A DNA stretch of 64,000 nt from Selaginella moellendorffii (lineage: Eukaryota; Plantae; Lycopodiophyta): contig NW_003314323.1 in the NCBI RefSeq assembly GCF_000143415.4, positions 62,001 through 126,000 of the forward strand, given 5' to 3'. Both the position numbers and the translations under genes were made by a program. Under the pieces are notes generated by a model, which was not told where the DNA came from, ran no database searches, and worked only from the letters and a program-made list of their open reading frames with translations. Below, piece after piece: positions 14,514-41,725 of the stretch (position 1 is the first letter of the stretch; each line of letters starts with the position of its first letter).

Positions 14514-16682
14514 CTACTCGAATCGATCATCCGGGCCACTGGAACCATACAAGTTTGCCAGCAAAACGTATGAGAAGGTTCCTCCGGGATCCATCTCCAG
14601 CGCCTTCTCAGCTGCTCGGACACCAGCAATCTCATCCTTGCTCGCAGCGCAAGCCGCGAGCAAAATCCCCCACACAACGTCGTGAGCTTCGAAAGGCATG
14701 GCCGCCGCAATCCCGTGCGCCAAGATCAGCTGCCCCGACCTCGCAAAGATATCTATCACGCAGCAAAAGTGCTCTCTCGCGGGAGCCACGCCAAAGTCAC
14801 AGGCCATGCCAGAGAAGAGAGCCAGAGCTTCGCAAACCATGCCTCCATGGCTGCACGACGTCAACACGCTCGCGAGCGTCGTCTTGTCCGGCTTGAAACC
14901 AGCCAAGTTCATCACCCTCAAGAGCTGGATCGCTCGCCCCGATCGCGAGTAAGCTCGGATCATCGCGTTCCACGACACTGTGTCCTGGCAAGGCATCTCG
15001 TCGAAAGTAGTCCTGGCCTCTCGGAGGAAACCATTTTGCTCGTAGACCGTGGCCATAGCGTTCCAAGCCGCGACGTCTCGTCCAGGCATGCTCTCAAAAA
15101 CATCCCTCGCTTCGTCAAGAGACCCGTTTTGTCCGAGGCCCGAGACTACCGAGCTCCACGACACGACTTGTCTCTGCGGGATCCGATCAAACAGCGCCCT
15201 GGCCTCATCGAGGAATCCAAACTGGCAGTAAACTCCGATCATGCTGTTCCACGAGACGACGTCCCGCTGTGGCATCTGCTCGAAAGTCTTGCGAGACTCT
15301 TCCCAGAAACCGTTTAGAGCGTATGCCATGATCGCTGCGTTGAAAGACACAACGTTGAGCTGCGGCATCCTCTCCAGCAACACCATGGACTCATCAAACA
15401 GGCCAGCGCGAGCGAATCCGGGGACCAGACTCGTCCAAGAACACATATCCCTCTCTGGAAGCTCGTCAAACTTCGCCTTCGCATCGCCCAACGAGCCGCT
15501 CTGCGCATACGCTGCAATGACCGAGTTCCACGAGACCGTGTTCCTGTGAGGGATCTTCTCAAACACCGCCAGGGCTAGATCGATGCTGCAGCACTGCTCC
15601 CCAGCGATCACCAGCGCCGTCCACGAGATCACGTCCCTCTCAGGCATCTGATCAAACAGAAACTTCGACTCGTCCATATACCCATTCCGAGCATACGCTG
15701 AAACGATGGAGTTCCACGACACCAGATCCCTGTGAGGCATCCTCTCAAACACCGTTCTCGCTCGATCGACATCAAAGTCACAGAGAAAAGATCTAGCCAT
15801 CGTGTTCCACGCGCCGACACTGCGATTCTCCATAGAATCAAACGTCGATTTCGCTTCTAGCACACGGCCATTCTGGGCGAGGAGCAAAACCATCACGCAG
15901 CACGCCACGGAATCCTTCTCGCCCATCGCCTCAAACGCCACCCGCGCCTCGTCGATCAATCCACACTCCGAGAATGTGACGATCATCGCGGTGGCCAAGA
16001 CAGTGTCGTGCTGGGGCATTTGTTCATACACTCTCTTGGCGCCATAGACATCCCCAGCGCCGGCATATGCCTTGACCACGCCAGTCCACGCAAGAACGGT
16101 CAACTTGGGCATCCGGTCAAACAGCCACTTGGCATCCGCCGGTTCGCTGGCGCAAATGAGGCAATTCCAAGCAACCTCGTTCCACGCGGGCATCCGGTCA
16201 AAGATTTTCTTTGCGTAGCTGGCGCACTGCGATTGGGCGTAGCCCGTGACCATCGTGTTCCACGTCACTAGGTCGCGGTGGCGGCGCATGCTTTGAAAGA
16301 GTGTTCTTGCGGCGTCTAGATGCCCTCTCTGGGCATATGCGGAGATCATGGAGTTCCACGAGATTGTATCCGCGACCGGGAGCATTCGATCGAAGAGCTT
16401 CCTGGCCTCGCCCACGAATCCATTGCGGATATAGACGAAGAGCATGATATTCCAGGAGCGAGTGTCGGGGTCGTGGATCATGGAATCGAAGACGAGCGAT
16501 GCCGCGCGGAGGTCCGCGCAGCTGCCATACATGGCGAGGAGGTGCTCGGCGACGATCTTGGAGGCGGCGAGGCGGGGATCGCCCTGGATGTAGCGGTGCA
16601 ACCGCTTGCCCTCTTCCAGATCCTTGGCCTTGACGCAGGATTTGAGGCGAGAGAGGAGCTCCTCGGCCGAGAACTTTCTCAT
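14514..16682 (-). CDS. PLS-class pentatricopeptide repeat protein with tandem short (31-aa) motifs and truncated E domain
   Basis: Intronless. Repeated DVVSWNS(M/I)..AY..NG...EA..LFD.MP units. C-terminus REHFCCVIDIFARSG..WGILLAAC..EKALEMDP..SYVLLANLY, no DYW. Confidence 0.93.
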   Translation of the reverse strand: MRKFSAEELLSRLKSCVKAKDLEEGKRLHRYIQGDPRLAASKIVAEHLLAMYGSCADLRAASLVFDSMIHDPDTRSWNIMLFVYIRNGFVGEARKLFDRMLPVADTISWNSMISAYAQRGHLDAARTLFQSMRRHRDLVTWNTMVTGYAQSQCASYAKKIFDRMPAWNEVAWNCLICASEPADAKWLFDRMPKLTVLAWTGVVKAYAGAGDVYGAKRVYEQMPQHDTVLATAMIVTFSECGLIDEARVAFEAMGEKDSVACCVMVLLLAQNGRVLEAKSTFDSMENRSVGAWNTMARSFLCDFDVDRARTVFERMPHRDLVSWNSIVSAYARNGYMDESKFLFDQMPERDVISWTALVIAGEQCCSIDLALAVFEKIPHRNTVSWNSVIAAYAQSGSLGDAKAKFDELPERDMCSWTSLVPGFARAGLFDESMVLLERMPQLNVVSFNAAIMAYALNGFWEESRKTFEQMPQRDVVSWNSMIGVYCQFGFLDEARALFDRIPQRQVVSWSSVVSGLGQNGSLDEARDVFESMPGRDVAAWNAMATVYEQNGFLREARTTFDEMPCQDTVSWNAMIRAYSRSGRAIQLLRVMNLAGFKPDKTTLASVLTSCSHGGMVCEALALFSGMACDFGVAPAREHFCCVIDIFARSGQLILAHGIAAAMPFEAHDVVWGILLAACAASKDEIAGVRAAEKALEMDPGGTFSYVLLANLYGSSGPDDRFE

Positions 16683-16940
16683 CAAATCCTCGCTCTCCGC
16701 CGCGCATTTTGTCGATCATGGAACCTCCGGAGCTAAATTCCGATGTTGGGCGAGTGAGACTGCGCGTGTATGGCTGCTGGAATCCAGATCGAATAGACTC
16801 TCCATGCGCTCAAAGCGCCAGAGCCATGCCCTAAATTACTGTTCGAGCGGACGGACAATATTTAAATAGGTTTCCCGCAAAGTAGAGATCCACCGTCCGT
16901 TGTGGAGGAATTAGGGTTCTTGAGTAAATCGTGCAATGGA

Positions 16941-18548
16941 ATGGAATCGCTCCTCCACAATCACGCCTCCATCGACATCCACACATACGCCACTCTTCTC
17001 CAGCAATGCGGCGAGCGCCGGGCTCTCGGCGACGGCAAAGCCCTCCACGCCCACATCGCGTCGCGGCTGCCAAATCCCCCACTCTTCCTCTCGAATCACT
17101 TGCTGGGCATGTACGCCAAATGCGGCAGCGCCCGCGACGCGCTCGCGGCCTTCGATTCCATGCGCGATCGCAACGTTGTCTCCTGGACAACCGTCGTCAC
17201 CGCATTTGCCCACGCCGGGCATCCCACCGCCGCGCTGCGTCTCTTCCAGCGCATGCTCGCGGAAGGCATCGCTCCAAACAAGGTGACCTTCGTCGCTGTT
17301 CTTCACGCCTGTAGCGATTCCCGCGAGCTCCTCGATCCTGGGAGGATGATTCACCGCTGCTGCGAGGAGTCCGGCCTCGGCCGCGATCGCTCCGTCGCGA
17401 TCTCGCTCGCCAACATGTATGGCAAGTGCGGGGACGTCGACACCGCCGCCTCGATGCTCGATGAGATGTTCCAGCCGGATGTGATCGCCTGGAGCGCGGT
17501 GATCACTGGATTCGCCCAGCAGGGGCGGAGCTCCGACGCTCTCCATCTCTTCCGGAGGATGCAGCACGAAGGCGTGATCGCCAACAAGATCACGCTCGTC
17601 GCCACCCTCAGCGCTTGCACGGACAGCTCGTCTCTGGCCGATGGGAAGTTCCTCCATTCTTTGATCGTCGAGAAGAAGCTCGAGAGCGATGTGATCGTCG
17701 GCGGAGCTCTGGTCACCATGTATACCAACTGTGGAAGCTTGGACGACGCTCGCCGGGCCTTTGGAGCTGTGAGACGTCCCAACGTCATCGCCTGGACTGC
17801 CATGATCTCTGCCTGCGTCCACTTTGGAGAGCTCGACGAGGCGCTCCAGATCTTCCGCTTGATAGAAGCCCAGTGCCTGGACGATCGCGAGCTCCTCCTC
17901 GACGGTATAGTCTTCGTGCCGCTCATCAATGCCTGTGCTCGTCTCACGGATCTCTCCCAGGGCCGACGGCTTCACGCTCGGATCTCCAGCGATGGAAGCA
18001 TCAAAGTCGACGTCCAGCTCGGGAACGCGCTCGTCAACATGTACTCCAAGTGTGGCAGCGTCGAGGAGGCCGCGAGAGTTTTCGATGGGATGAAGTACCG
18101 GAGCACTGTCAGCTGGAACACGATGATCTCGGCGTACGCGATCGCTGGTCATAGTGAGAAAGTGCTGTGGATGTTTCACAGAATGCAGCAGGAGGGTGTC
18201 GAGCCGGACGAAGTGAGCTTTGTCGGAGTTCTCTCGGCTTGCAATGCTGCTGGGACTGTCGAGGAGGGATGCAAGTACTTCGGACTTTGCTGCGAGGAGT
18301 ACCGCATTTTGTTGGAGCCGCAGCACTTCGGGTGTTTGATCGACTTGCTCGGCCGGGTTGGATATCTGGACGAAGCGGAAAGGCTGCTCAGGAGAATGAA
18401 GGAGCCGGATGTCATGGCCTGGATGATGCTGCTGGACGCTTGTCGAATTCACAACGACTTGACACGAGCTAAAGCTGCTGCCGAGCGTGTTCTTGAGCTG
18501 GATCCTGGAAACAGTGCGGCTTATATCATGTATACTCAATCAAGTTAA
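16941..18548 (+). CDS. PLS-class PPR protein with truncated E domain
   Basis: P-L-S triplets (NVVSWTTVVTAFA / PNKVTFVAVLHACS / LANMYGKCG). E1 QHFGCLIDLLGRVG..AWMMLLDACRIH..ELDPGNSAAY. Head-to-head with the previous PPR. Confidence 0.93.
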   Translation: MESLLHNHASIDIHTYATLLQQCGERRALGDGKALHAHIASRLPNPPLFLSNHLLGMYAKCGSARDALAAFDSMRDRNVVSWTTVVTAFAHAGHPTAALRLFQRMLAEGIAPNKVTFVAVLHACSDSRELLDPGRMIHRCCEESGLGRDRSVAISLANMYGKCGDVDTAASMLDEMFQPDVIAWSAVITGFAQQGRSSDALHLFRRMQHEGVIANKITLVATLSACTDSSSLADGKFLHSLIVEKKLESDVIVGGALVTMYTNCGSLDDARRAFGAVRRPNVIAWTAMISACVHFGELDEALQIFRLIEAQCLDDRELLLDGIVFVPLINACARLTDLSQGRRLHARISSDGSIKVDVQLGNALVNMYSKCGSVEEAARVFDGMKYRSTVSWNTMISAYAIAGHSEKVLWMFHRMQQEGVEPDEVSFVGVLSACNAAGTVEEGCKYFGLCCEEYRILLEPQHFGCLIDLLGRVGYLDEAERLLRRMKEPDVMAWMMLLDACRIHNDLTRAKAAAERVLELDPGNSAAYIMYTQSS

Positions 18549-27597: not shown

Positions 27598-29463
27598 TTA
27601 AGTATCATTGCATCTCTGAAGTATTTCTGATAATGGCTTCCTGCAATTAAACTCAAACATTAGGTCGATTAGACCTTTGTGCAAATCTATGCTGGCATTT
27701 CTATATCTTTCAGTCTCTTTCTCCAAAGTTCCAGGCCTCTTCCCTTCGATGTATCTCTCAAGACAAATCTCATGAAAAGGCATCCATTTCTTAGTCACAG
27801 GCAAGAACAAAGGTGGCAGCACTTGGCACGAATGCCGGAATGGAATCCCCACGATCTCGTCGGGGAGAGGCTTGATCCTCCTGGCATACTCGAAAACTCC
27901 CTTCTTTCCCTTGATCTTCCAGCTGAGATCATCGCCGCCAAGCTTGTAGACGGGCGCTCTCCTCTGGAGCCGGTGCTTGGAAGCGTACATGATCGCCAGG
28001 GACGATCGCAGGACAAACGCCAGGAACACCGTGATCTTCTTGCGGTTGATCGCCAGGCGATAGAAGCCGGCCAGGAGATGGAGGAGATCCGAGACCTGGA
28101 GGTTGGCGTCCTCCTGGCGCGCCTTGAGCAGCCGCAAGCACGGATGGATCTTCATCCTCTGCCCGGCCGGGAGCTCCAGGATCTTCAATCGCGCCAGGCT
28201 CTCCACGCAATGCTTCATGCTGGCCACCAGCCGGATCTTCTGCTTGCTCACCTCCCGCGAGTTCTCTCGGCTCCGAGGAATTCGATGCTCGAGGGCCGCG
28301 TCGGCGCTGGCCTGGATCGTGTGAGCCAGGAATGGAACCTTTTGCGAGAGGTGGAAGATCTCCGGGAAGAGCTCGAGCTTGAGCTTGTCGCGGCAAAACT
28401 CGCGGAGCTTGGCTTCCATCGCGACGATCTCCTCGTCGGCGCCTTTGATCCCCAGGAGAAAATGCCCGGCGTAGCGAACGTACTCCATCGCCTGGCCCTG
28501 CCCCTGCGCGGCGTCGAATTCCTCGATCTCGCGCTCCACGAATCGATCGAGCTCGTCCAGGACGATGTTGAGCAGCAGCGGGCTCAAGATCTTGCAGCTC
28601 CCCCAGTGTGGCGAGTTCTTCCCCTCGATCGGTCCCATGGCGAGGAAGCACTTGAGCCAGAATGGTCGATCCTTCTCCCTCGTCAGGCGATGGATCTCTT
28701 GCTCCATCACTCGCCACTTCTTCTTCTTGGAGAGGAAGTACTCCTCCGGGACGATGGTGTCTCTCGTCTCCACCGAGAGGCCATCCCTGACGAGCTTGAC
28801 GATCAACTCGTCCTGGACGACGCGAGAGAAGATCTCCATCGCCACCTCCAGCTCCAGGCTCTCGAGGATCGACGTCTTGGCGGTGATGAACCACGTACAC
28901 TCTTGGAAGCTGCCAGTGATGTACTTGAGCGCTGTCATCGCTGTTCTTCCGGGCCGAAACGCGAAGGATCGATGCGAGAACCGCGCCTCAAACACGGGCT
29001 CCAAGATCATGAGAAGAACTTCCTGGACTACGCGATCCTGGAGCTCGGGAAGCTTGGTCGGGGAGAGGAACGCTGGAGTGAGATAGAGCGTGCCGGTGCC
29101 GCCCCAATCGTATCGCTGCGAGAGCACCGCTTCGCGCAGTGGATCCAGCTGCGCGGCCAGCTTGGGATGGAGGGGGCGATTCTTGGGGACGAAGAAATCC
29201 AGCGCCCGGCACGATCGCCAGTAGGCCATCTCCCACAAGACCTTGCTCTCCATGGCGCTGGACGCGTTCTTGAGGATCGAGTGCCTGTCCTGGAAGCCCT
29301 GGATCCAGTGCTCACCGCATAGCCGTGCGCAATCGCTCGCCCATCCGCCATCTTTGCCCTGAGAATGATCGATCCAGCGATGGCGGGATTGACGCGCATA
29401 CCTGCGGCACTGGAATGGAGGTGCGAAAGCTCGATTCGTCGGCCGCATTCCGGGGTCTGGCAT
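27598..29463 (-). CDS. nMAT: Nuclear-encoded group II intron maturase, type I (nMAT1/nMAT2-like; RT + domain X, no endonuclease)
   Basis: QDRVVQEVLLMILEPVFEARFSHRSFAFRPGR, WGSCKILSPLLLNIVLDELD, YVRYAGHFLLGI (degenerate YADD), domain X VLRSSLAIMYASKHRL..VYK. Intronless. Confidence 0.9.
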   Translation of the reverse strand: MPDPGMRPTNRAFAPPFQCRRYARQSRHRWIDHSQGKDGGWASDCARLCGEHWIQGFQDRHSILKNASSAMESKVLWEMAYWRSCRALDFFVPKNRPLHPKLAAQLDPLREAVLSQRYDWGGTGTLYLTPAFLSPTKLPELQDRVVQEVLLMILEPVFEARFSHRSFAFRPGRTAMTALKYITGSFQECTWFITAKTSILESLELEVAMEIFSRVVQDELIVKLVRDGLSVETRDTIVPEEYFLSKKKKWRVMEQEIHRLTREKDRPFWLKCFLAMGPIEGKNSPHWGSCKILSPLLLNIVLDELDRFVEREIEEFDAAQGQGQAMEYVRYAGHFLLGIKGADEEIVAMEAKLREFCRDKLKLELFPEIFHLSQKVPFLAHTIQASADAALEHRIPRSRENSREVSKQKIRLVASMKHCVESLARLKILELPAGQRMKIHPCLRLLKARQEDANLQVSDLLHLLAGFYRLAINRKKITVFLAFVLRSSLAIMYASKHRLQRRAPVYKLGGDDLSWKIKGKKGVFEYARRIKPLPDEIVGIPFRHSCQVLPPLFLPVTKKWMPFHEICLERYIEGKRPGTLEKETERYRNASIDLHKGLIDLMFEFNCRKPLSEILQRCNDT

Positions 29464-38055: not shown

Positions 38056-39037
38056 ATGGGTGCTCTCAAAGTCATTGCATTGCTGTTGTTGGTCGAGCTT
38101 GCGCTCTCTGCTCGTCTCCCACCAAAGTCAGATGTTTCTTTCTCTGAGAACTACTATGTCCGATGGGCCAACGATCATACGCGAGTCCTCAACGGTGGCA
38201 CCGAAATGCAGCTTGTTCTCGACAAGGCATCAGGTAACAATCTCTCTTTCTTTCAAAGCTTCTCTTTTGCTGATCAAGTCCTGTTGCATGATAGGTGCTG
38301 GATTTGGGTCCCGCAGCAAATACTTGTTCGGTCATGTCAGCATGAAGATCAAGCTGGTTCCCAAAGACTCTGCTGGAACAGTGACGGCATTCTACATGTC
38401 ATCCGAGACCGACAAGCACGACGAGATCGACTTTGAGTTCTTGGGGAACGTTTCCGGGCAGCCATACATCGTCCAGACCAACGTTTTCGCCAATGGCGTT
38501 GGAAACCGGGAGCAGCGACACTACCTCTGGTTCGACCCCACTCAGGACTTCCACAGCTACTCCTTCCTCTGGAACAAGCAGCAGATCATGTAAGTTAGCC
38601 CTCTATAGCTACTCGATCGATCATTGCTGAAACTGTGGTTTTGATCCCTCAGATTCTACGTGGACGATGTCCCTCTGCGTGTCCACAAGAATAACGAAGC
38701 CATTGGGATCCCATTCCCGAAGAGCCAGCCCATGGGGATCTACTCGAGTCTGTGGAATGGAGACGACTGGGCTACTCGCGGCGGGCTGGAGAAGATCAAC
38801 TGGGATCACGCTCCATTCGTGGCGGCGTACAAGGGATTCAGCGTGGATGCTTGCGCCGGGGGCGTGGAGTCTTGCAGCGCTCCCAGGGGCAACTGGTGGG
38901 AGCAAAAGGCATTCCAGCGCACCGACAAGGAGACCAAGAGCAAGCTCAAGTGGGTCAAGGACAACTACATGATCTACAACTACTGCAGCGATAGCAAAAG
39001 ATTTCCCACCACTCCAGCCGACTGTGGCCAGTTTTGA
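38056..39037 (+). CDS. XTH: Xyloglucan endotransglucosylase/hydrolase (GH16, group I/II)
   Basis: Signal peptide, catalytic [51 protein letters not shown]. Two introns. Confidence 0.95.
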
Positions 39038-39117
39038 GAGCTTCCATGTACTTACATTCTTTTGTACAAAAAAACACACATTTTTTTTACCAGACTTTGC
39101 ATGCTTCCTCCGTAAAA

Positions 39118-40443
39118 TCATGCCATAGTTGCCTGGCTCTCATCGAAAATCGGTGCGAGATACCACGCGTAAGGAAGGCCTTTCTCCTCGGAGGAAGTGT
39201 TGTAAGAGGCATGCGTGATTTTTCGCCTTCTAAAGTATTCTCCCCATGCGTACTGTACTATGAACCTGCGGGAAGAAGAAAGTGTTTGTGAAAAGGCACG
39301 AGCTTGAATGAGAAAGTTTTTTTAAAGTACCACAAGACGATGGCGATCGCACAGAGGGAGATGAAGAGTATCGCTGTGACTTGGGATTCTCCAGAGTACT
39401 TGATCCATCCGATGACGATCATGCTCAGGAGGAAGAGAGAAACACCTGCGGCGGAAGAAAGCAAAGGATTTGGCAAGTGTTTTGCACGGCTTACCGAAAG
39501 AAAAGGAATGGAAAGCTTGCTGCCAGGTAGTCTCACATCTGCGTCGCCAGCAAGATCATGAGAGAGTGTACTTACGACAGAAGAAAAACAAGGAAAAAGA
39601 ATGAAAAATCTACCTGCAATACCAAAAGGCTTCCAGAGTTCTCCTGGGCGCAGGAGGATGATCACCTGGATTGTAGTTTCGACAAAAGTCTAAGCAGCTA
39701 AAGATGAATTCCTCCTCGGCTTCTTCGTTGACATAAGTTCTGCCAATCTTGAGAATGCTTCCTAGAATAAGCGTACAGGTAACCATTGACATGATCATCA
39801 ACCCTTCCTGCAAGAAAAGAGTGAGCTGAATTTTAGGTAGATTAGGAAATCTCACCACAACAGCCGTGAGGACTCCATACACTCCAAACAAGGCCTACTG
39901 CGAGAAACAATGAGTTGAGGAACCGCGACAAATAACTTCGAAACAATTAACCTTTGAAAACTTCATTTGTGGTTGGAACTGCGTAAGCGTGACGATAGCG
40001 AAGCCTGCAAAGAGCGCTGACAAGTTTGACACTGCCTTGAGAAGCTCCGATTTCTCTTCCACATCTCGACGATTCCTCTCCACAAATCTGCCAAAGAGTT
40101 GCTATAGACCAAAAGAATAAAACCAAACAAAGCACAGAGCTTGCCTTAGCCAAAGGCAGCGCGCATTCTCCAAATTCCTATACTCCAGATTCTCCTGCCT
40201 CCACCTGCGATCGATCCATCACTGCAAGAAATCCCTTGTTCTAGACCCTCACCACCGCTTGCTCGCGCGCAATTCGGCGTCGTCCTTCCTCACTCGGCGC
40301 TCCACACGCATCCACTCCACATCCTGCGATCGCGCCTCGTGAATGTGCGCCCGCCAGGCCGCGTCCTCCTCCCGCCACGCCCGGTTCATGCCGCTGTCCA
40401 GCGCCGCGAGGATGCCCTGCGCTGCGTCGCCCGCGCTCGCCAT
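39118..40443 (-). CDS. ORAI: Orai/CRAC calcium-channel family protein (4 TM), eight exons
   Basis: TM1 LLKAVSNLSALFAGFAIVTLTQFQ aligns to Orai1 [24 protein letters not shown]. TM3 GVSLFLLSMIVIGWIKY aligns to GTLLFLAEVVLLCWVKF. Exons join in frame using a GC-AG intron (40088-40144) and a CAG-TAG tandem acceptor near 39897. Confidence 0.8.
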
Positions 40444-40449
40444 AGCTGG

Positions 40450-40544
40450 CAAGAACCCTAAACCTTTAAAAAAGTATTACACGCTGGCATTAAAATTTCC
40501 AAGAACCCTAAACCTTTAAGACAACTTTACACGCTCGCATTAAA
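40450..40544. repeat. Tandem 50-bp duplication upstream of Orai
   Basis: CAAGAACCCTAAACCTTTAA..TTACACGCT.GCATTAAA present twice with period 50 (40450 and 40500). Confidence 0.85.
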
Positions 40545-40597
40545 TCCCTTTTAAAACGTAAGGAGAAAAAGTATACAAAGGTTTATAGGTCTACCAA

Positions 40598-41725
40598 TCA
40601 ATCAACTGGGATTGGTACCATAATGCTATCATTTCTTGCACTTGCAAAGATCAGTTCTTCCAGCTCCCCTTCCTCCGAATCCACATGATCTAGAAAAACT
40701 CACAAAGAATGAATCAAAGATCTTACAACTTTGCAAAAGCTCGGCTTTTCATCGTGCTAACCTGGATCTTCGTCGAAGAGGATAGCTTTGCTGGTGCCAC
40801 TGCTCTTGAAAACCTCCATCTTGATCACGCGATTGCCTCCAAACACCTCCAGATGCACGAGATCGCCAGTCTCGAGCTCTTGATCCTCCACAAACTGCCT
40901 CCATTCATGGCGCTTCACCATGAATCTCCTCCCGGAGCTGTGCACGCTCAGCGATTGGCAGCTCCCGCCATTGATCACGCGGTACTGCATCCCGATGTTG
41001 ATGTGCGCGCGCACGAATCCTGGGGGCAAGTTCTAGAGCACACACAAGCAATCACAGAGAAGCCAAGGTTGAAGGAGAAAGATCATAGAATCCCAGGGGA
41101 AGATCGATACCAGAGTGAAGCTGGGCGACAAATGCGACCTGGTGATCTTGATGTCGATGCTGGGCTTGTCCGTGTCGCTGCAGATCGTCACGCTCGACGG
41201 CCTGCCATTCCCCTTTGCGCGTTTCCTGGCTGGCGGCGACGCACTGTCGTCATCTCCCGAGACTTTGGAGCTGGAGTCCAAGCTCGCCGCCGCCCGGTTC
41301 TTGGCACCGCCGCCGCCGCTCCTCCGCCTCTTCCTCCTCGGTGCTTTTTCCTTCTCCGCCTCTTCCTCTTCCTCGTACTCCTCCTCCTCCTCCTCGTCTC
41401 CCCCCGGGCGAAACCTTTGGAGAAGCTCCAGCTGCTCGTGCTGGCTATGGCGATCATCGTAATCGCCATCACCCTCCTCGTCATCGTCGCCCTCTTTCTC
41501 TTCCTCCGGGTCCTCTCCCTCGTCTACCTCTCGATGCTGCGCTTGGAGATGGCGATAGTTCGCGTCGGGATCGCCACCACCGTCGCCCACACTCTTCACT
41601 CGCAAATTCCAGCCATGCTCGCCTCCTCCATCTTTCTTCGTCAAGCTCTTCCTCCGAATCACAACGCTTGCTTTCACCTCTAGCTCTTCCTCCGCGCCGA
41701 GCGCCCGATCGAGACTATTTCCCAT
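40598..41725 (-). CDS. Divergent B3-domain-like protein (copy 1)
   Basis: Acidic/basic N-terminal half, then IKITRSHL..LPPGFVRAH..EWRQFVEDQELETGDLVHLE (B3/REM-like). Three exons join in frame. Confidence 0.65.

Follow-up and report, generated by a model that had tools for sequence, protein, structure and literature searches.

The Selaginella moellendorffii gene LOC9644061 raises the question of what an Orai protein does when the residue that confers Ca2+ selectivity on animal Orai has been replaced by the very substitution that kills the channel in the laboratory, while the pore helix remains strongly constrained. The same combination is seen in the streptophyte Orai proteins sampled here. 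Reviews of plant calcium biology describe Orai as a Ca2+ channel that was kept by early land plants and lost in flowering plants, and they raise the question of store-operated Ca2+ entry in plants (PMC8318260, PMC11894410, PMC7016017). It had also been published that Physcomitrella and Selaginella have Orai, that angiosperms do not, and that STIM is lacking (PMC7016017, PMC11085791, PMC8318260, PMC11894410); each of these papers cites Edel et al. 2017 or Collins and Meyer 2011. We found no statement about the filter residue of plant Orai in the literature searched; those two cited sources fall outside that literature, and an earlier notice is possible. At stake are the role of Orai before STIM existed and what the flowering-plant lineage really lost.

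LOC9644061 lies on the minus strand of the window, by which we mean the whole stretch of 64,000 nucleotides that was analyzed. Its coding span (39118-40443) has exactly the boundaries of the original prediction and encodes 308 amino acids, from an ATG at 40443-40441, the first in frame after an upstream stop, to a TGA at 39120-39118. Assembled transcript contigs from four public runs belonging to four studies, placed on window positions 38700-41000, resolve eight exons and seven introns of 48-76 nt, six of them GT-AG and one GC-AG. Every exon junction is backed by spliced contigs from these four runs. Because the contigs lack introns, they must originate from mRNA, and the gene is thus transcribed and spliced. 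Together the exons total 927 nt and hold a single frame of 308 intact codons. The features are as follows.

40444-40501, minus strand: 5' UTR, a minimum extent; the contig of one run reaches 40501
40253-40443, minus strand: exon 1, residues 1-63, an N-terminal helix with many Trp, Arg, Glu and Asp residues; from contigs, a frame check and an exact protein match
40145-40204, minus strand: exon 2; joint 40087/40145 in four runs
40088-40144, minus strand: GC-AG intron after exon 2; joint ends CT..GC on the plus strand, four runs
39952-40087, minus strand: exon 3, the pre-TM1 motif NRRDVEEK and pore helix TM1; Pfam Orai-1 E 4e-11 from exon 3 alone
40024-40026, minus strand: Asn105 codon AAC, at the R91 position (Drosophila K163) by HMMER alignment
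39979-39981, minus strand: Gln120 codon CAG, the filter site (human E106, Drosophila E178) by HMMER against Drosophila Orai structures
39856-39894, minus strand: exon 4, 39 nt and 13 amino acids, the start of TM2
39614-39807, minus strand: exon 5, the remainder of TM2 and a conserved intracellular loop with a PPxP motif; Pfam Orai-1 E 4e-7
39798-39796, minus strand: Met146 codon, at the H134 position
39495-39538, minus strand: exon 6, a 44-nt micro-exon, residues 208-221, the start of TM3; joints 39443/39493 and 39538/39614, four runs
39331-39445, minus strand: exon 7, TM3 and the start of TM4; from contigs, a Pfam piece and HMMER alignment
39425-39423, minus strand: Ser229 codon, at the E190 position
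39118-39265, minus strand: exon 8, the end of TM4, a tail with GLPYAWY (family motif GLPxxW) and the TGA stop

The micro-exon keeps exons 5 and 7 in a common frame, and a model without it contains a frame conflict. The original GenBank model, EFJ14511.1 (184 amino acids), is truncated. Spliced LOC9644061 mRNA was found in many Selaginella runs. The transcripts of the four mapped runs show seven synonymous coding differences and one non-synonymous difference. At the CAG codon (39979-39981), the transcript contigs of the four studies show no base difference. Correction of this codon at the RNA level was considered and rejected, because the transcripts themselves read CAG.

The peptides of the eight exons occur exactly and in order within XP_002984461.2 (“uncharacterized protein LOC9644061” of S. 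moellendorffii), a protein found through an exhaustive HMMER search that used the TM1 exon and a word search that used the best full-length relative. The corresponding gene on scaffold GL377627.1 sits between a B3-domain gene and a xyloglucan endotransglycosylase gene, matching the window. A further locus, LOC9636777, encodes a protein identical at 307 of 308 positions, the sole difference being S179N; since this change also occurs in two RNA runs, LOC9636777 represents the other haplotype of the assembly. Two Selaginella Orai genes were recovered in all, each on two haplotype scaffolds. The second (LOC9653726/LOC9632197) is 53% identical to LOC9644061, with which it shares its architecture and its Gln.

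The convergent xyloglucan endotransglycosylase gene on the plus strand has its stop at 39037, 80 nt from that of the Orai gene (39118, minus strand), and assembled transcript contigs span the two genes (window 38700-39265), so their 3' ends probably overlap. Just past the 5' end of the Orai gene is a B3 DNA-binding-domain gene (40760-41029, minus strand), with an intron at 40690-40761 in one run. Elsewhere in the window, a 621-amino-acid open frame (27601-29463, minus strand) shows weak matches to reverse transcriptase and group II intron maturase and looks like a nuclear maturase-type gene. Two adjacent pentatricopeptide-repeat genes lie at 14517-16685 (minus strand) and 16902-18545 (plus strand), the latter with a probably spurious 542-amino-acid open frame on its opposite strand.

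The original prediction that this gene encodes a plant Orai homolog is borne out by both profile and structure searches. The whole protein matches Pfam PF07856 (Orai-1) with 141.6 bits against a cut-off of 25 (E 2.6e-41, profile positions 2-170 of 173), and three separate exon pieces match the same profile in colinear order (E 4e-11, 4e-7, and 4e-6). An AlphaFold2 monomer model built from an input alignment of 35 sequences (pLDDT 88.4, pTM 0.70) has the four-transmembrane-helix Orai fold, and its best eight Foldseek matches are all Drosophila Orai, with a probability of 1.00 and TM-scores by target of 0.59-0.75. The family profile searched against the PDB reaches Drosophila Orai with an E value of 2.6e-13, and its filter column falls on E178. 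The full protein also reaches this structure, whereas the TM1 exon alone found no match in a phmmer search of the PDB; a protein atlas search with a 45-amino-acid exon gave weak leads only. LOC9644061 is a real, expressed, full-length Orai-family gene.

Pore residues were mapped by aligning the protein with HMMER to chains 4hkr, 6aki, and 6bbf of Drosophila Orai, with no gaps in TM1; for the correspondence between Drosophila and human numbering, we assume the textbook equivalences. Gln120 aligns with Drosophila E178 (human E106) in both single-sequence and profile HMMER alignments, and the outer-pore glutamate ring of CRAC channels is therefore missing. Leu109, Gly112, Phe113, and Val116 occupy the positions of L95, G98, F99, and V102, meaning that the hydrophobic gate and hinge glycine are kept. 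The basic inner pore formed by R91, K87, and R83 is represented by Lys101 (the K87 position) alone, with Asn105, which aligns with Drosophila K163, in place of R91 and Ser97 in place of R83. Met146 aligns with Drosophila H206 (human H134). Ser229 aligns with Drosophila E262 (human E190), and the TM3 glutamate of CRAC channels, which influences their selectivity, is therefore also gone; Asn or Ser is found there in green-lineage relatives. Beyond TM4, the AlphaFold2 monomer has almost no helix after residue 277, a region of low confidence, and no C-terminal coiled coil of the type through which STIM activates CRAC channels is evident; this end of the protein carries a different conserved motif, GLPxxW.

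These alignments agree with the residues first assigned by eye, namely Gln at E106, Asn at R91, Met at H134, and Ser at E190, along with the retained L95, G98, F99, and V102. E178 is the selectivity glutamate of Drosophila Orai (PMC11085791), and we asked whether a corrected alignment might restore an acidic residue to this site. It does not: because residues 120-129 (QFQPQMKFSK) lack an acid, no realignment can place one at the filter. The TM1-TM2 loop as a whole contains no acidic residue and two lysines. A proposal that Asn at the R91 position compensates for Gln was rejected, since Asn is usual there in Gln-type and Glu-type non-animal relatives alike.

Relatives of LOC9644061 reveal how widespread the exchange is. 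The filter column is Gln in 76 and Glu in 44 of the 120 significant matches to the TM1 exon, and further searches extend the set to 323 relatives, of which 322 have Glu or Gln (179 Gln and 143 Glu) and 1 has Asp. For many of these relatives a source name was obtained. All named streptophyte Orai proteins sampled carry Gln in a near-invariant TLTQF motif. They come from lycophytes and seed plants (Selaginella and Diphasiastrum, with two genes each, Picea sitchensis, and Ginkgo biloba), from mosses (Sphagnum, three groups; Ceratodon, two; Physcomitrium), and from streptophyte algae (Chara braunii and Closterium, the latter with two groups). Three EukProt proteins with “SM000...” locus names, which we take to be from a zygnematophyte alga, also have Gln. 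Among other green algae, Gln is found in Trebouxiophyceae (Chlorella, Micractinium, Coccomyxa, Apatococcus, and Myrmecia) and Sphaeropleales (Tetradesmus, Enallax, and Chromochloris). Glu is retained in Chlamydomonas reinhardtii (the published “Orai”, CHLRE_01g025000), C. incerta, Volvox, Pleodorina, Tetraselmis, a pedinophyte, Cymbomonas, Pycnococcus, and Ostreococcus.

Among the named streptophyte matches, neither the exhaustive HMMER search based on the TM1 exon nor either of two word-based searches yielded a Glu-type Orai; the Glu-type proteins with a source name belong to chlorophyte algae only. A Glu-bearing paralog in the same genome had been considered, and both recovered Selaginella paralogs instead carry Gln. 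The named matches of all searches come from non-flowering green plants or green algae, with no angiosperm among them, as had been expected. Judged from these sequences, Gln is the fixed streptophyte state rather than a private mutation. We dropped the idea that the exchange from Glu to Gln tracked a move from the sea to freshwater or land, because the freshwater algae Chlamydomonas, Volvox, and Pleodorina keep Glu. A speculative link to flagellate sperm is weakened by the several copies in Closterium, the one copy in Picea sitchensis, and the breadth of Selaginella runs with the mRNA. Closterium lacks flagella and the sperm of Picea are non-flagellate, so a sperm-restricted role fits poorly.

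Two further observations concern the chlorophyte proteins. In their Gln-types, LQFD usually stands in place of the LEFQ of Glu-types, as though the acid had shifted two places outward, and streptophytes do not share this pattern. In addition, proteins of Chromochloris zofingiensis (433 amino acids) and Myrmecia bisecta (532 amino acids) contain tandem double Orai domains, both with Gln; they represent natural concatenated subunits or else fused gene models.

In a maximum-likelihood tree built from 46 Orai domains, the streptophytes occupy a single clade of 21 sequences, all with Gln (support 100/99). Within it are two land-plant subfamilies. LOC9644061 falls in one of them (100/97) with Ginkgo and one copy each from Diphasiastrum, Sphagnum, and Ceratodon. 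The second Selaginella gene falls in the other (93/81), with the remaining Diphasiastrum copy, a different Sphagnum copy, and the Picea cluster. Because zygnematophyte sequences group with each subfamily, the duplication that separated them is older than land plants. The Glu/Gln state requires three changes on the tree, with the Sphaeropleales Gln group sister to the Chlamydomonadales Glu group (98/96), and a single Gln clade is rejected at a cost of 36 log-likelihood units (AU p = 0.015). As reconstructed from this tree, Gln had three or more independent origins in green algae and was kept thereafter.

Conservation was scored as mean top-residue frequency per segment in the 35-sequence alignment. 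Among streptophytes, it is highest in the pre-TM1 segment (0.94) and TM1 (0.88), and lowest in the outer loop (0.30); the tail scores 0.38. TM1 of Gln-type streptophytes is at least as conserved as in the family overall, and the gate and hinge residues are invariant or nearly so in both types. Green-lineage Orai proteins of both types also share elements that animal Orai lacks. These are N-terminal repeats of the WREED kind, modeled as one continuous helix with TM1 (residues 2-120), the invariant pre-TM1 motif NRRDVEEK, conserved cysteines and a PPxP motif in the TM2-TM3 loop, and a C-terminal GLP[FY]xW[HY] motif, which 117 of 139 long relatives contain.

We favor the reading that LOC9644061 encodes a working, STIM-independent Orai pore subunit that lacks CRAC-type Ca2+ selectivity, and we assign it a probability of roughly one half. 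Oligomeric assembly, conduction, selectivity, and the mode of gating are the parts of this reading that we infer. A site restricted to Glu and Gln, a swap that recurs and becomes fixed, and a pore helix that is not relaxed together argue that Gln is a functional alternative in a working pore. TM1 packs on TM2 and TM3, so its conservation could instead reflect assembly. The literature searched contained no electrophysiology of green-lineage Orai. STIM is reported to be absent outside animals and choanoflagellates (PMC11085791), and its absence from plants, assumed from the start, agrees with published accounts (PMC11085791, PMC11894410). Of the three roles originally proposed for this protein, a STIM-independent channel of different selectivity fits best.

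By homology with the hexamer of Drosophila Orai, the protein would form an oligomer with a pore lined by TM1. The pore would retain the gate (Leu109, Phe113, and Val116), the hinge Gly112, and one basic ring (Lys101), and it would combine them with a neutral outer ring of Gln120, Ser in place of the TM3 glutamate, and an acid-free outer loop. Since such a pore would have no acidic Ca2+-binding ring and no high-affinity Ca2+ site, CRAC-type selectivity should be lost, and ions would most likely pass with a different, weaker selectivity. Gating would proceed without STIM, and more likely through cytosolic elements conserved across green-lineage Orai. Candidates are the long N-terminal Trp/Arg/Glu/Asp-repeat helix that runs into TM1, NRRDVEEK, the Cys/Pro-rich TM2-TM3 loop, and GLPxxW. 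Plant Orai proteins probably differ in their working from the animal calcium channel after which they are named.

A bolder version holds that the exchange from Glu to Gln was a recurrent, adaptive re-tuning of selectivity, and that plant Orai proteins are channels not selective for Ca2+, passing monovalent cations or even anions under their own STIM-independent gating. The independent events would have taken place in the streptophyte ancestor, Trebouxiophyceae, and Sphaeropleales, with Gln kept thereafter. Vegetative cells in all three groups are mostly walled and non-motile. We regard this extension as tentative and, as a whole, unlikely. If it is true, plant Orai proteins should not be counted as Ca2+-entry channels.

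A silent pore is a reasonable default, because human Orai1 E106Q is pore-dead and is used as a dominant-negative (e.g., PMC3050638, PMC5190020). The Gln ring might shut the pore permanently, leaving a protein that survives as a membrane scaffold, sensor, or regulator in the manner of Jiraiya/TMEM221, an Orai derivative without Ca2+-binding residues (PMC7016017). The loss of both pore glutamates would suit such a protein, and the strongly conserved cytosolic motifs could be its binding sites. However, conservation peaks in the pore helix with its gate and hinge, which is unrelaxed in Gln-type streptophytes, a site that accepts only Glu or Gln does not resemble one released from constraint, and Gln was gained at least three times and then retained. 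The scaffold role entertained in the original prediction therefore fits poorly, and we consider a non-conducting protein somewhat improbable, although it is the main rival.

A pore that still selects Ca2+ seems quite improbable. Ca2+ would then be bound by the carbonyl oxygens of Gln or by acids elsewhere at the pore mouth, for which the Asp usually found two residues past Gln in chlorophyte Gln-types (LQFD versus LEFQ) and the Asp or Glu found 4-6 residues past Gln in some streptophyte orthologs might serve. Yet LOC9644061 and its Diphasiastrum ortholog have no acid in the TM1-TM2 loop, where LOC9644061 has its two lysines, this loop is the least conserved segment (0.30), and the TM3 glutamate is missing as well.

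Selaginella has more than one Orai gene, and mixed Orai assemblies and a dominant-negative E106Q are known in animals, which would allow LOC9644061 to act as a regulatory or dominant-negative subunit by co-assembling with a Glu-bearing Orai of the same plant. No such partner was seen, however: Gln is present in both Selaginella paralogs, both Diphasiastrum copies, all Sphagnum and Ceratodon copies, and the other named streptophytes, and Glu-type proteins among the named matches are confined to chlorophyte algae. We think this role very unlikely. The unusual residue and the truncated first GenBank model might suggest a decaying gene, an assembly error, or an RNA-corrected codon, but we can practically dismiss these given the intact 308-codon frame with all junctions confirmed, the unchanged CAG in transcripts of four studies, the mostly synonymous differences among alleles or samples, and the same Gln in orthologs from Chara to Ginkgo.

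At least three natural swaps, together with close Glu-type relatives in Chlamydomonas and Volvox, make reciprocal Glu/Gln exchange straightforward. LOC9644061 shares its Pfam family and four-helix fold with animal Orai/CRAC channels (human Orai1-3; Drosophila 4HKR, 6BBF, and 7KR5), as well as the TM1 positions L95, G98, F99, V102, and K87. It differs from them in having Gln for E106, Ser for E190, Asn for R91, Ser for R83, and Met for H134. Its N-terminal helix is also much longer (residues 2-120 in the model), its tail after TM4 is mostly non-helical at low confidence, and plants have no STIM partner reported in the literature. The human Orai1 mutant E106Q carries the identical change at the position of Gln120, engineered there and natural and lineage-wide in plants. 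Because the LOC9644061 pore also lacks R91 and R83, the behavior of that mutant is not simply transferable.

Closer comparisons lie within the green lineage. Orai of Chlamydomonas (CHLRE_01g025000) and of the prasinophytes Ostreococcus, Pycnococcus, and Cymbomonas belongs to the same green-lineage subfamily and shares with LOC9644061 the N-terminal repeats, NRRDVEEK, the loop motif, GLPxxW, and Asn at R91. These proteins keep the filter Glu in the form [FL][LV]E[FLM], in contrast to the streptophyte TLTQF. The second Selaginella Orai (LOC9653726/LOC9632197) has Gln too, but belongs to the other ancient streptophyte subfamily. Jiraiya/TMEM221 is likewise an Orai-derived membrane protein without the Ca2+-binding residues (PMC7016017). 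Jiraiya is an animal-only offshoot, whereas LOC9644061 matches the Orai-1 domain in full and retains the gate residues of its pore.
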